Shown here in pieces: positions 1,229 through 23,674 of a stretch of DNA of 64,000 nucleotides. The first letter of the stretch is position 1, and each line of letters begins with the position of its first letter. The stretch is from Bugula neritina. Its lineage: Eukaryota > Animalia > Bryozoa. Location: positions 17,467,875 through 17,531,874 of the forward strand of contig OZ037768.1 of assembly GCA_964035545.1 (NCBI GenBank), read 5' to 3'. The notes below the pieces were generated by a model. That model did no database searches and was not told the DNA's origin. It saw only the letters and a program-made list of their open reading frames with translations. A program made the position numbers and the translations under genes.

Positions 1229-4200
1229 ATGAGCATGTCTCTTTTTACTCTTCTCAAACTCTGTGTTTTACTGAATCTGGTGTCTCAGAGTGACACACTG
1301 AGAGTTGGATCATGGAGTTTCAGCTCGTTTGGAAAAACCAAGTTGTCAAATGATGAAGCAATGACAACAATATTGCAGGTGAGTGAAATTGAAATAGTCA
1401 AAAAACAATTAACCACTCATTCCCTATACTACTTTTTTTATTTTGTAGGTCTATTAGATATATACACTCGGAACATTTTGGAATAGATGTTTTAAACTCA
1501 CACTCTAATTTTAAATTTCTCTCTCTAGTTACATAATATTTAGATGCTAGCATAGCTTTTAATACTTTTTTCCTTCCCCAGTAGGCTGCATGTGAACATA
1601 ATTTACCCATCAGTTTTCCTTTAGTATTGCTATGTTAGAGTGGTTATAGTCTCAAAGACCATGGTTTTTTAAATGCATAAAAATACCTTGGCCAAGTTTT
1701 GTTATAAATTAGCAGTCGTGTTACCATTATATAACAGTGTTTGCCAAAAAGTTGTGCACTGTGTAGGCATTCTTGACAAAATCTAAATCATTGTAAAAAG
1801 CAGATTTTTTTGAATTCGATAAATTGAATTTAAGCATGTTCTAAAAATTTTAAAATTTAATTTCTCTTTAAATTCTAAACTGTACTTGTAGAAATGCTAA
1901 TCTTAGTTCTTTCTTGACTAATGCAATTTTGCTGTTAAAGAGCAAATAGATTTAACTTACTGCTAGAGGCCACTTACCGGAATATCATGTTGTCTTTCAG
2001 TGGTACCAGCATTTATGGTGACAACATGTCTGGGTTGAGATTAAATTTCATATATATATATATATATATATATATATATATATATATATATATATATATA
2101 TATATATATATATATATATATATATATATATATATATATATATATATATATATATATATCATAGTTATGAAAGTGCCAGCTCTTCTTCATGATAAACCTA
2201 TATTATATGATTATTTTATTTTAATATAAAATGAAAAACAAATGCTGAGAATTCAGTGAGCCATTGTAGAATATCTTTCTTAAGAATTAATTTATTTGAT
2301 AATTTTAGTAATTATAATATATATGTGTGTGTGTGTGTGTGTGTGTGTGCGTGTGTTTTCATGTGCCTAAGTGAGTCATACACTGTAGAAACACTGAAAT
2401 ATGAGTTAACGTCCTATTAAGTAAAGCAAAAGCAAGGATTGAATTTTTTAGGTCAATAGCAGAAATTTAAATGGAAAGAATTGAGTAATCTTGTTTGCAG
2501 TTTAAAATTAATCAATAGCCTTTTGTTCTTGAACAAATATTAACATTATTTGTAAAATAAAAAAATAAAACATAAGGTGTTGGCAAATTTATTACAAATA
2601 TCTTTGCATAGCTGGAACTGTTGAAAAAATATTTATAGATTGTTAGAAATATAATGTTAAAATGCTAAATGGTAAGATTTTGAGGGTTAATGCGCCTCAA
2701 ACCTTTGAAGTTTTGTTGGAATTGTCAGACATTGACTCAGATGGATCATCAAACTATTATGTAAATGTGATGGCTATTGCTGTTGCCCATTGGCCAAGGA
2801 AAATAAGTTAATGACAATTGCGAATGAGAGTTACAGCTTACCCTTCAGTCAGTCATGCAGCCAGCCAGCCAGCCAGCCAGCCAGCCAGCCAGCCAGCCAG
2901 CCAGCCAGCCAGCCAGTCAGTCAGTCAGTCAGTCAGTCAGTCAGTCAGTCAGTCAGTCAGTCAGTCAGCTTTTGCTCCCTCTACTGTATTATATAAAAAG
3001 TACTCCAAGTTATATTGATCCAATACTTTGTCTCTGCTTAAGCCATGCGTTGTCATCCCAGTTAGATGCTAGGCTAAAGTTCCCACTTAGATGCTTCTCA
3101 TTTGAACGCTCCCCAGATAGACGCTATTTATTTATTTTGGTACAATATATATTCTCTGTGCAATTTATTTGAAAATTAATTAAATATACCTATATTTCAA
3201 TAAACCTGGATCAATTGCTTGTTATTTAGCACATAAAGAAATTCTTTTGACCTGCATTATGTTATTAATTTTGCATTATCTATACTTTTTGTTGTTTGAA
3301 AAATTATTTCGTTAATATAAGTATTCATTAAAGATAATATCTGTTATTCATGTATTAGTGCTTTTTTGTCTCATACACATATCTGAGAAAATTTGAATAT
3401 TATCCCAGATAACTTCTATTAGCTATTATGGCTATTATAGCTATAGCTAATTAGCAATCAATGGAACATTTATATGGGTATATATTATGGGTATATAATT
3501 GTATGTAATGGTACCAAAATAAAAACTAGCGTCTAACTGGGAAGCGTCTATCCGGTATGAAACCAGCCATGCATACACCTGTTAACTGCACCTTATTTTC
3601 TGAAGATCAAACTCAAGGTTGATGTTCAATGAAAATCACTCACATTTACGCACTTTGATAAAGCTTCAAAATTAATTGGCATAATTTCAGCATTTTCTAG
3701 CAATATGTTTTTCCTGCAGGATATCTTTGGTCAAATTTTAAGTTTGTTGATGTAAACCTGAATATATATCATAAAATCATAAAGCTATTTCTGCAAAATA
3801 TTATGAAATTAATAGTCTGCATTATTATTTATGTTGAGTAATTTTTCAGATAATGAGACGATATGACGTGATTTTTATTCAAGGAATTAGAGATTCAAGT
3901 CAAGATGTTTTGCATGAGCTGGAGAATAGACTCAACACCAGGTATATTTTTGTTCTAATTTATGAAAGGAATCGTAGCAACTTTATGCTATGACCATAGA
4001 AAGTAGGATGATGCATGGCCAATGAGCATTCTTCTATATTTAATTGCTATAATAGAAATAGTCTTTTAAATAATATTTTGTGTAAATCGACCACGTAGAA
4101 AGGCGTGTTGTCAATAACCAATAACATCAATTTACACAAAGTTATAAACATTGTCTATAGCTTGTTTTATTTTAAGTGCAAAGAAAAAAACGCACATGAT

Positions 4201-22600: not shown

Positions 22601-23674
22601 AACTACTGCAAATGCTAACTGCGCTGCTGACCGGTAAGTTAATTATTATCAGACATAAATGTTATGATAAATCAATAATCTAGAAAAATAAATATATTGC
22701 CAATAAAATTTAGAGAAGTTTATAATTGTGCATCTAGTATGATGATTACACTCCACCTTTCAGCAAGTTAATATATATAAGTAAGGCTTTACTAAATTTT
22801 TAAATTTGAATATTTAACAATTTTTAACTAATTGTTGAAATTGAAAATTTTAATGTTTTTGCACATAACTTTCACAGGATGATAGCCAATGGAGCTTTAC
22901 TCAATCAGCTGATAAATGAATCATCAGTTCAAGCATTTAGATTTGATGTATACTACCACCTTAATTCCACACAGGTAACGGTTAGAGATCAAGTTTATTA
23001 TATATACATAGTATATATATATATATATATATATATATATATATATATATATATATATAAATATATATATATATATATATATATATATATATGTATATAT
23101 ATATATATATATATATATATACATGTATATATATATATATATATATATAATATATATATATATATACACATGTATATATATATTTTTTAGACTAAAGCCA
23201 TTAGCCCCAGATACCCAGTAGAAGTTATTATCATGGAACCACCTAGTGCTCCTGTAGACAATGGAGATACAACTACCAAAAGTGGTTCGATTAAGGCCTG
23301 GGTCAGCAAAGGTATAAGTTTGCATTGAAAAGTTGGCATTACATGAAAAAAAACAGAAATTGATATAAAGAAGTATCACTATTTACAATTGTGAATTGCT
23401 TTTGCAATTGGCTATAGTTAAAAAAATTCTACAACCAACTATATAAAATATTTGCCTCCCCTGGAATTTGACCTACAGACCTCCTGCTTGCAAACCTAGC
23501 ATGCTAACTATTACACTGCAACACCACTAGTTATTATCAACACTACGCTAACCAATCATCATTAGAAGTCAGGGCTTATAAAGGCAAAATCCAATATGTT
23601 TGAATGTCATAATTCCCCAATGTCTATTTTTAGTGTTCCTGCTTGCTATTGTGGTCATTCTCAAGACGGTATAA
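10613..23674 (+). CDS. DNase I-like protein copy 2, predicted catalytically inactive, GPI-like tail, ~313 aa
   Basis: Exons 10613-10756, 14644-14735, 19988-20065, 20555-20658, 21105-21217, 22482-22633, 22878-22974, 23191-23311, 23634-23674. Lengths and phases match copy 1 except exon 8 (108 nt shorter) and a start two codons later. Motifs: [60 protein letters not shown]. Confidence 0.88.
10826..11660. repeat. (TG)n - palindromic AT spacer - (CA)n fold-back microsatellite
   Basis: (TG)n 10826-11102, spacer TATA...CAT AAT ATG...TATA centred at ~11122, (CA)n 11146-11588, then (TA)n. Confidence 0.9.
11700..11960 (-). pseudogene. Degenerate Penelope-like element reverse transcriptase fragment
   Basis: Frameshifted W.K....FFDVTMGS / [14 protein letters not shown], matching the PLE RT motif FDVTMGSxDGAExCELVG. 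Confidence 0.65.
12201..12312. repeat. (TA)n microsatellite
   Basis: Direct reading. Confidence 0.95.
13451..13685. mobile_element. Decayed hAT MITE
   Basis: Ends cagaggcaaacaa ... aagttgcccacccttg with tggccc subterminal repeats like the 9872 element. TSD is degenerate. Confidence 0.6.
15423..16195 (-). pseudogene. FtsK/HerA (A32-like) DNA packaging ATPase, one frameshift at ~15640
   Basis: Walker A GKSGCGKT, Walker [27 protein letters not shown]; C-terminus in ORF 15423-15605. Confidence 0.85.
16207..16693 (+). pseudogene. Zn-ribbon plus parvovirus-type phospholipase A2 (PLA2X-like) protein, internal stop at 16513
   Basis: CxxC...CxxC N-terminus; [12 protein letters not shown] (Ca-loop), [10 protein letters not shown] (HDxxY with Y replaced by stop), RNEICD. 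Confidence 0.8.
16680..17583 (+). pseudogene. Polinton-type retroviral c-integrase with C-terminal chromodomain-like segment
   Basis: [86 protein letters not shown]. Stops and frameshifts are present. Confidence 0.88.
17583..17653. repeat. Short direct repeats (GTGGACAC/GACACAAA) between the integrase and the next gene
   Basis: gacacaaaagtggacac x2, then gtggacacaaat x2. Confidence 0.8.
17673..18390 (+). pseudogene. Decayed Polinton-associated protein of unknown function
   Basis: [19 protein letters not shown]... frameshifted through [13 protein letters not shown]...DIENY..IL and [10 protein letters not shown] to [17 protein letters not shown]. These motifs resemble conserved Polinton/adintovirus accessory proteins (from memory, not searched). 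Confidence 0.55.
18705..19502 (+). pseudogene. Fibre/adhesin-like repeat protein, frameshifted
   Basis: [30 protein letters not shown] (YadA-stalk/tail-fibre-like), then about five ~39-aa repeats KLxxSTxxGxVxxSxxxVxDxITKTNxxxYAIP. Confidence 0.6.
21401..22377. mobile_element. pogo/Tc1-like MITE in intron 5 of copy 2
   Basis: TIR taggggaaacctgggtgatatg..ccac / gtggcccatatcacccaggtttccccta, TA flanks, internal TIR-like repeats. Absent in copy 1. Confidence 0.85.
23430..23530 (-). mobile_element. tRNA-derived SINE-like remnant
   Basis: - strand tRNA-like head gcagtgtaatagttagcatgctagg...aggtctgtaggtcaaattcc. Absent in copy 1 intron 8. Confidence 0.5.

Follow-up and report, generated by a model that had tools for sequence, protein, structure and literature searches.

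Genes and features of the locus

The window, which is the whole stretch of 64,000 nucleotides that was analysed, contains two genes, A and B, on the plus strand and a third gene, C, on the minus strand. Exon-by-exon translation gives 9 exons and a protein of 351 amino acid residues for gene A (1229-8784), and 9 exons and a protein of 313 amino acid residues for gene B (10613-23674). As the methionine codon that lies further upstream in gene A reads ATA in gene B, gene B starts with the ATG at 10613. All introns of both genes are GT-AG introns with phases of 0, 2, 2, 1, 0, 2, 0 and 1 in either gene, stop codons are present neither inside the exons nor in the junction codons, and the exon lengths differ among the copies always by multiples of 3. 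The nine in-phase, stop-free exons per gene that had been proposed from the DNA alone (hereafter the sequence-only reading) are thus confirmed. The region upstream of gene A (980..1228, plus strand) was duplicated along with the gene, and its paralogous copy is located at 10359-10612 (families D7 and D18). Intron 2 of gene B contains a broken, non-autonomous Polinton/Maverick-type element (15332..19866) with terminal inverted repeats of ~310 bp and a target-site duplication of 6 bp. This element is missing from the B. neritina homologue.

Gene C (31031-25219, minus strand) is an intact DNase I gene of the active type that encodes 344 amino acid residues, with 11/11 catalytic residues present. 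Its exons (31031-30870, 30026-29935, 29639-29556, 28582-28467, 28290-28178, 27645-27491, 26991-26895, 26634-26544 and 25343-25219) follow the plan of genes A and B and share their intron phases. The last exon is hydrophobic, and its assignment is less certain. Gene C lies outside the region covered by the sequence-only reading and was missed there.

Active site, fold and C-terminal tail

Searches were run exon by exon, and script analyses were done on per-exon alignments or partitions. In a search of PDB sequences, exon 6 matches residues 163-212 of bovine DNase I (E=3e-10); the B. neritina protein P0210 matches residues 1-122 of DNase I (E=2e-15). By sequence similarity, A and B are members of the DNase I family. 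Single exons give no matches to Pfam PF03372, because they are too short, and P0210 scores 22.9 against this family, below the cut-off of 24.5. Exons 1, 4 and 5 have no DNase match among the PDB sequences, and their positions rest on the alignment of homologues, on P0210 and on gene C. When metagenomes were scanned with the exon-6 alignment, the sole match was a DNase I exon of another, unrelated animal (L007), and an exon-6 word search returned P0055 alone.

When the exons are aligned one by one with 48 DNase I domains, the nine active-site replacements listed in the sequence-only reading are seen in both A and B. Exon 1 (1229..1378 in A and 10613..10756 in B, all exons of both genes being on the plus strand) encodes the predicted signal peptide and carries N7S; that of A also contains the first strand and R9S. 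Exon 2 (3850..3941 and 14644..14735) carries E39G, with R41 kept in A and with R41K and D42G in B. Exon 3 (5040..5117 and 19988..20065) carries E78I, and in A also Y76H, R73D and a sequon at position 64. Exon 4 (6644..6747 and 20555..20658) carries R111W, D99 and E112 being kept and position 114 being Phe in A. Exon 5 (7084..7196 and 21105..21217) carries H134K in A, together with Tyr at 136 and P137E, and H134R in B. Exon 6 (7484..7635 and 22482..22633) carries N170K and Y211A, and keeps D168, C173, C209 and D212, as well as the Ca-site-I loop in A. Exon 7 (7889..7985 and 22878..22974) is followed by exon 8 (8230..8458 and 23191..23311), which carries D251P and H252R and encodes an S/T-rich stalk with the candidate GPI omega site SGG in A and a short stalk with the candidate omega site SGS in B. 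Exon 9 (8744..8784 and 23634..23674) encodes a hydrophobic tail and the stop.

Both catalytic histidines, H134 and H252, are therefore absent, Lys or Arg and Arg being present instead, and D168 and D212 alone are kept among the metal ligands N7, E39, E78, D168, N170, D212 and D251. That only these two residues remain had also been read correctly, 2/11 catalytic residues being kept. All three copies (A, B and B. neritina) carry the same replacement residues, except for Lys or Arg at 134. In DNase I, H134 and H252 are the catalytic histidines, and single mutants of E39, D168 or D212 keep very low activity (PMC2987838). Judged from their sequences, A and B are pseudoenzymes in the sense that they lack the conserved catalytic residues of the family. 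Sequencing error is ruled out as the source of the dead residues, because the same residues are present in two B. neritina assemblies that are independent of each other.

The B. neritina homologues, which are taken as those of a sibling species, carry the dead residues of A and B. The hypothetical protein EB796_009199 (KAF6032492.1) is a direct homologue with 72-94% identity per exon over exons 1-4, and its splice sites of exons 1-4 and its dead residues are as in A and B. It is unannotated, a different frame is used for its last exon, and its model is truncated because its contig is without exons 5-7. In the copy of GCA_010799875.2, exons 5-7 are gone through a 2-kb deletion.

The structural residues C173, C209, D201, T203, D99, F109 and E112 are kept in the dead copies, in agreement with the earlier claim that the two cysteines and the Ca-loop (D201 and T203) are retained. 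Among the Ca-site residues, D107 is apparently replaced and D172 coincides with a gap of one residue. For the N-terminal half of the B. neritina protein, AlphaFold predicts the DNase I fold with a pLDDT of 94, for this half domain only and from an input alignment in which active DNases predominate, and Foldseek matches this half to 2dnj with E=5e-11 and TM 0.90.

A hydrophobic segment (KD9 2.4) precedes the mature start and is a putative signal peptide. The many NxS/T sites and the hydrophobic tail noticed from the sequence are both found: the sequons number 6 in A and 9 in B versus 3 in the active gene C, and the C-terminal exon is hydrophobic in A and B. The stalk after the last strand consists of 28 residues in B versus 64 in A. 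In all three copies, the tail consists of a small-residue triplet, a 7-residue spacer and a hydrophobic end, and the candidate omega site is followed by 22 residues. A small triplet, a spacer and a hydrophobic tail constitute the rule for a GPI signal (PMC5054108), and A and B, which fit the signal by this rule, may be GPI-anchored. A true transmembrane helix is less likely than a GPI anchor, the hydrophobic run being ~10-13 residues long and ending at the C-terminus. The putative membrane anchor is probably older than the catalytic loss, because gene C, too, ends in a hydrophobic exon that follows the same phase-1 intron.

Origin of the dead copies and selection on them

The dead copies group with gene C (aLRT 99.7) in a tree from which the catalytic columns were removed and in which support is given as aLRT only (fast mode). 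Their summed identity to gene C is 46-48%, and that to any other homologue is <=38%. These results show that the dead copies derive from the gene C lineage. By the same grouping, A and B are not orthologues of DNASE1L1, in a tree without a confirmed labelled DNase1L1. The stem branch of the dead copies measures 0.54 substitutions per site. In the Bugula lineage, an ecto-DNase I that was probably tethered to the membrane would have been duplicated locally. One daughter, gene C, would have remained a nuclease. In the other, the two catalytic histidines and most of the metal ligands would have disappeared before the A, B and B. neritina copies split, tandem duplication following thereafter.

The dead copies keep 37/42 (A), 33/42 (B) and 32/42 (B. 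neritina) of the other family-conserved positions versus 2/11 catalytic ones, and this difference is significant by Fisher's test (p = 2e-5, 4e-4 and 7e-4 respectively). Gene C keeps 11/11 and 39/42. Neutral evolution along the three-copy tree is expected to produce 8-10 nonsense mutations, 8-10 GT/AG losses and ~22 frameshifting indels, whereas none of each is observed. The omega value of the three sequences is 0.53-0.60 (p = 0.005-0.013 against 1), and 43-53% of the sites of these three sequences are near omega 0. Across comparisons omega is 0.4-0.7 versus 0.06 for the neighbouring HOGA1, which serves as a control, and the amino acid divergence between the window and B. neritina is ~20% for the dead copies versus 2% for HOGA1. 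For B and B. neritina omega is 0.72 and not significantly below 1 (p = 0.18). Among the copies, 79% of the family-conserved columns and 69% of the other columns are invariant, a difference that is not significant (p = 0.19), and the pocket residues, taken alone, are not significantly more invariant than a background of ~72%. The positive-selection test (M2a versus M1a) gives a weak p = 0.04, which is unreliable for three sequences with mosaic exons. Selection acts on the open reading frames and the fold of the dead copies, which are constrained yet fast-evolving; the constraint is moderate, not strong.

A and B are very probably selected pseudo-enzymes. The earlier proposal that they are selected and not decaying is supported in that the open reading frames and splice sites survive, catalytic residues are lost in preference to structural ones, omega is below 1 (~0.6, p = 0.005 against 1) and the same residues are present in the sibling species. 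It is weakened by the moderate constraint, by the dN/dS of B versus B. neritina alone, which is not significantly below 1, and by the one copy without exons 5-7.

Proposed function and comparison with known systems

The A and B proteins are most likely secreted, N-glycosylated and GPI-anchored via the S/T stalk. Of the DNase I architecture they would retain the fold, the 173-209 disulfide and a large part of the structural Ca sites. Metal would no longer be bound at the old active site, with K/R134, K170 and R252 at histidine and metal-ligand positions, with D168 and D212 as possible counter-ions of these residues and with W111 and Y136 at the pocket rim. The pocket gains three basic residues, and the domain is overall net acidic, the net charge over exons 2-7 being -8 to -15 in the dead copies and -27 in gene C. 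The DNA-contact residues R9, R73, Y76, R111, N170 and Y211 are lost, and the canonical DNA-groove contacts are partly lost in A and B. A DNA receptor, one of the functions proposed in the sequence-only reading, is a possible role of A and B. A and B probably act as non-enzymatic binding proteins. Their likeliest job would be to bind, without catalysis, an extracellular ligand that bears phosphate or sulfate, such as extracellular DNA, an anionic glycan or a microbial surface, at the cell surface, and they may tether substrate beside the active gene C. A and B are presumably expressed and devoid of any activity, and their ligand is presumably of this kind. Binding of an anionic ligand is proposed tentatively, as possible rather than probable. 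The best overall explanation, which is considered fairly probable, is that A and B are paralogues retained as functional pseudo-enzymes, which would be GPI-anchored and would bind an anionic ligand. It is unlikely, but conceivable, that they represent the first cell-surface receptor family on the DNase I fold, in which Lys and Arg replace the metals and grip extracellular DNA or an anionic ligand of microbes or of allorecognition, and that the same conversion was repeated across invertebrates. Their fast evolution would then be caused by host-microbe (e.g. symbiont) or colony-colony recognition.

Dead surface mimics of gene C might instead serve as decoys, another proposal of the sequence-only reading, and sequester a DNase inhibitor or effector of a microbe, symbiont or predator. 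The adjoining active parent of the same topology, the divergence relative to HOGA1, the weak positive-selection signal and the turnover of copies are consistent with such a role, but it is improbable, because the pocket is heavily remodelled instead of mimicking that of gene C, the identity to gene C is only 46-48%, no inhibitor is known, and the positive-selection test is unreliable. Little probability is also given to relaxed duplicates that were formerly useful, are now dispensable and are becoming pseudogenes. The absence of stops, splice losses and frameshifts, the retention of structural positions along a long stem on which catalytic ones were lost, and the invariant class comprising about half of the sites argue against decay, whereas omega values of 0.6-0.7, not different from 1 for B and B. 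neritina, the exon 5-7 deletion, the transposon insertions within introns and the fact that no full-length A/B-type product was found in the protein collections searched argue for it.

A metal-poor phosphatase or lyase that acts on another phosphoester with D168, D212 and the new Lys and Arg is similarly doubtful. Neither D168 nor D212 varies, all copies have the same new pocket residues, the EEP fold hosts many phosphoesterase activities (Foldseek matches), and migrated catalytic residues are documented in pseudoenzymes (PMC10211241). However, both histidines, E39, N7, N170 and D251 are lost, and the tolerance of Lys or Arg at 134 argues against a catalytic lysine. An allosteric or substrate-tethering partner of gene C in trans, comparable to what dead domains may do for the active ones in the multi-domain DNases of sea urchin and rotifer, is very improbable and partly overlaps with the best explanation. 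Lytechinus XP_041458011.1 and Seison KAI3388607.1 contain dead and active DNase I domains in one polypeptide, and A, B and C form a cluster and all seem to be tethered to the membrane, but the urchin and rotifer dead domains are of independent origin. Extracellular actin scavenging via the DNase I-actin interface, as proposed in the sequence-only reading, is hardly credible. Actin-binding DNase I has a small residue at 114 and the interface E13/H44/D53/Y65/V67/E69. Y65 is retained and an acidic residue occupies position 69, but A, B, C and B. neritina all have Phe at 114, and an aromatic residue at this position lowers actin affinity ~10^4-fold (PMC8002113, PMC9381713), which contradicts the proposal. 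In addition, a conserved N-glycosylation sequon at 64 adjoins the interface, and interface positions 13, 44 and 67 are K/T, S/N and A/V.

Pseudoenzymes that originate from duplication are common. Among open-access papers, none was found that describes DNase I-family proteins with a dead catalytic site, and the word 'inactive' is absent from a review of the DNase family (PMC9208542). The dead DNase I family of A and B is known so far from one genus only, and its function is a proposed one. A and B share with the DNase I family (EEP superfamily, PF03372; bovine DNase I, 1DNK/2DNJ) homology, the predicted fold of the N-terminal half, C173-C209, D201/T203, D99/F109/E112 and a predicted signal peptide, but differ from it in that 9/11 catalytic, metal or DNA-contact residues are replaced and a stalk, a hydrophobic tail and more glycosylation sites are added. 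The active parent and two dead daughters are adjacent and have the same exon structure, and therefore their activity, binding and localisation are directly comparable.

Vertebrate DNASE1L1 (DNase X), a GPI-anchored ecto-DNase, likewise consists of a DNase I domain and a GPI-type C-terminal signal, which is a candidate signal in A and B, but is active, unlike A and B. The bryozoan anchor would be convergent with that of DNASE1L1, because DNASE1L1 and its GPI signal arose in bony fishes (PMC9208542). The fungal RNase II-like Ssd1 pseudonucleases represent a duplicated nuclease that became non-catalytic and was kept as a binder, as proposed for A and B (PMC8097288); they differ in that they have another fold, are intracellular and have demonstrated RNA binding, whereas A and B are predicted to be extracellular and to bind a proposed ligand. 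Catalytic residues are lost as in A and B in the N-terminal domain of the Lytechinus protein and the third domain of the Seison protein, both of which are database predictions. These domains are fused to active domains and are not membrane-tethered, unlike A and B, and each groups with its own active domain, indicating independent origins. A clade shared by the urchin dead domain and the Bugula copies is rejected (AU p = 0.023, with a fast constrained tree). The Lytechinus dead domain shows N7S, E39G and H134K as in A and B, and this independent recurrence in a sea urchin suggests a repeatable route from a nuclease to a binding module.

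Active site and predicted topology of genes A and B

Genes A (1229-8784) and B (10613-23674), the tandem copies on the plus strand, each consist of nine GT-AG exons without stops and with intron phases 0,2,2,1,0,2,0,1, in agreement with the sequence-only reading. Their predicted products are 351 and 313 aa long, respectively. Queries for the sequence searches were single exons, database proteins or one natural read-through ORF of exon 1 in the window, and each script analysis treated the exons separately. Exon 6 matches residues 163-212 of bovine DNase I (E=3e-10). When each exon is placed on 48 DNase I domains, all nine replacements that had been claimed (N7, E39, E78, R111, H134, N170, Y211, D251 and H252, mature DNase I numbering) are confirmed, and D168, D212, C173, C209 and most Ca-site residues are kept in both genes, as had also been read. 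These positions are otherwise 90-100% invariant among homologues, gaps ignored. Because catalysis by DNase I depends on the histidines H134 and H252, and mutation of E39, D168 or D212 leaves almost no activity (PMC2987838), it is very unlikely that the products of genes A and B have DNase activity. Approximately 250 bp 5' of the start codon is duplicated along with the gene (980-1442 and 10359-10820, 76-90% identical) and is a candidate shared promoter.

The C-termini of all three dead copies, those of genes A and B and of B. neritina, run from a triplet of small residues through a spacer of 7 residues to a hydrophobic end, 22 residues past the candidate omega site. This predicted layout fits the GPI-signal rule (PMC5054108). 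Hydrophobic tails also terminate several other homologues, and the anchor of DNASE1L1 was acquired separately, in bony fishes (PMC9208542).

Origin of the dead copies and their genomic surroundings

Gene C (minus strand, 31031-25219), a third DNase I paralogue, of the active type and intact, which was overlooked in the sequence-only reading, is convergent with gene B, has the same intron phases as genes A and B, and contains neither lesions nor replaced catalytic residues. Its last exon is hydrophobic, follows the same phase-1 intron and is succeeded by a 22-residue acidic tail; it is a candidate transmembrane or GPI-type segment. The DNase I tree, partitioned by exon and with the catalytic columns removed, unites genes A and B with the B. 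neritina copy in one clade (aLRT 100), which is sister to gene C (aLRT 99.7). This placement indicates that the dead genes originated, as judged from the tree, by local duplication of an active DNase I. The duplicated active ancestor was probably membrane-tethered, and the membrane anchor is probably older than the loss of catalysis.

The window comes from a bryozoan and not from human. The HOGA1 exon (45723-46109, minus strand) is 98% identical to a protein clustering with B. neritina KAF6033890.1. Two B. neritina assemblies share 85-90% identity with the window DNA and 99.2% with one another at that locus; the source of the window is therefore a sibling species or close congener of B. neritina, a known species complex (PMC7576161). 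The search for homologues in related genomes, which had been proposed earlier, identifies two B. neritina contigs with the same dead residues as genes A and B: L004 (JGI), with intact exons 4-7, and L008 (NCBI), with exons 1-4, 8 and 9 (protein EB796_009199). With 94-96% identity and a LINE insertion in common, they are either divergent alleles or young paralogues. Compared with L004, L008 has lost exons 5-7 in a clean deletion of 2 kb (L008 13660 / L004 759-2799), which ends in an intronic LINE and may represent a null allele, a pseudogene paralogue or a misassembly. A second gene copy is not found within 10 kb upstream in L008. The exon-by-exon likeness of the B. neritina homologues to genes A and B is a mosaic, which suggests gene conversion or unequal crossing-over. 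For the B. neritina protein, structure prediction from an alignment of mostly active DNases gives a DNase I half-domain in the N-terminal half (pLDDT 94; Foldseek 2dnj, TM 0.90).

Intron 2 of gene B carries a 4.5-kb Polinton/Maverick-type element (15332-19866) with terminal inverted repeats of about 310 bp and a 6-bp target-site duplication, and L008 represents its empty site. It encodes a Pox_A32 ATPase, DUF5679 plus PLA2-like and an rve integrase in ORFs interrupted by stops and frameshifts; neither polymerase nor capsid is seen in it. A full-length Ty3/Gypsy-type LTR retrotransposon (33787-38475) splits DNA that matches an F-box gene of B. neritina. Its 262-bp LTRs are 100% identical, its 1311-aa gag-pol ORF is intact, and its insertion is very recent. 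In intron 1 of gene B (10826-11592), a 277-bp TG repeat lies opposite a 447-bp AC repeat as a near-perfect inverted repeat, possibly a hairpin or an assembly artefact. The window also contains a gag-like fragment at its start (1-710, by eye), an integrase fragment in intron 3 of gene A (5670-5960), LINE reverse transcriptase, hAT and pogo-type DDE remains (47135-47920, 48424-50374 and 52983-55097), and the beginning of a gene resembling Integrator subunit 8 (60936-63760, plus strand; PDB 7cun_H, E=2e-5).

Selection on the dead copies

Of the catalytic positions, 2/11 survive in the dead copies, as against 32-37/42 of the other positions conserved across the family (Fisher p = 2e-5 to 7e-4); gene C retains 11/11 and 39/42. 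Judged from intron and synonymous divergence, neutral evolution across the three-copy tree should have produced 8-10 nonsense mutations, 8-10 hits in GT/AG splice sites and about 22 frameshifts, and no such lesion is found in it. Codon models, implemented in our own scripts rather than codeml, give pairwise omega (dN/dS) values of 0.63 for A-B (p = 0.037), 0.43 for A-B. neritina (p = 6e-5) and 0.72 for B-B. neritina (p = 0.18); that of the HOGA1 control (DHDPS family, two coding exons, 44733-46170, minus strand) is 0.06. With all three sequences together, omega is 0.53-0.60 (p = 0.005-0.013), and the outcome is the same when L004 and L008 are each taken alone. The proposal that these are selected pseudo-enzymes is supported by the omega below 1; that of the B-B. 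neritina pair alone is not significantly below 1. With three sequences, about half of the sites fall near omega 0 and the remainder near or above 1; the sign of positive selection (p = 0.04) is not strong enough to be relied on. The genes are maintained, yet their proteins evolve quickly.

Putative ligand pocket and comparison with known DNases

E39, E78 and D251 are missing from the pocket, in which K/R134, K170 and R252 are new and W111 and Y136 lie at the rim; all copies share these residues. The remodelled pocket could accommodate a phosphate or sulfate group without metal, and D168 and D212 would act as counter-ions. Canonical DNA binding is probably compromised, because the contact positions R9, R73, Y76, R111, N170 and Y211 are replaced; R/K41 and Y175 remain. 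Mutation of the R111 equivalent lowers the DNA affinity of DNase1L3 five-fold (PMC9381713). Binding of actin, and with it the scavenger function considered earlier, is unlikely: Phe occupies position 114, where it confers about 10^4-fold actin resistance on DNase I (PMC8002113), and a sequon is present at 64. On this basis, the favoured reading is that the proteins are GPI-anchored and would bind an anionic extracellular ligand. Its remaining rivals are that the proteins serve as a decoy, are decaying, have changed chemistry or act as a partner of gene C.

By descent and predicted fold, genes A and B belong to the DNase I family, but they do not qualify as active DNase I and are not orthologues of DNASE1L1. 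No paper describing catalytically dead DNase I proteins is found in the open-access literature, and these genes constitute a real, lineage-restricted pseudo-enzyme subfamily that is apparently undescribed so far. Dead DNase I domains occur elsewhere. The tandem-domain protein of the sea urchin Lytechinus (P0057, residues 27-271) has a dead N-terminal domain with N7S, E39G and H134K as in Bugula, the third DNase I domain of a protein of the rotifer Seison (P0059, residues 615-872) is degenerate, and a DNase I domain on the animal contig L007 (2530-2637) has Arg at 134 (H134R). The urchin and rotifer dead domains each group with their own active domain, and the AU test rejects a common origin for the Bugula copies and that of the urchin (p = 0.023). 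Dead DNase I domains are not unique to Bugula, and the urchin, rotifer and L007 cases are independent.
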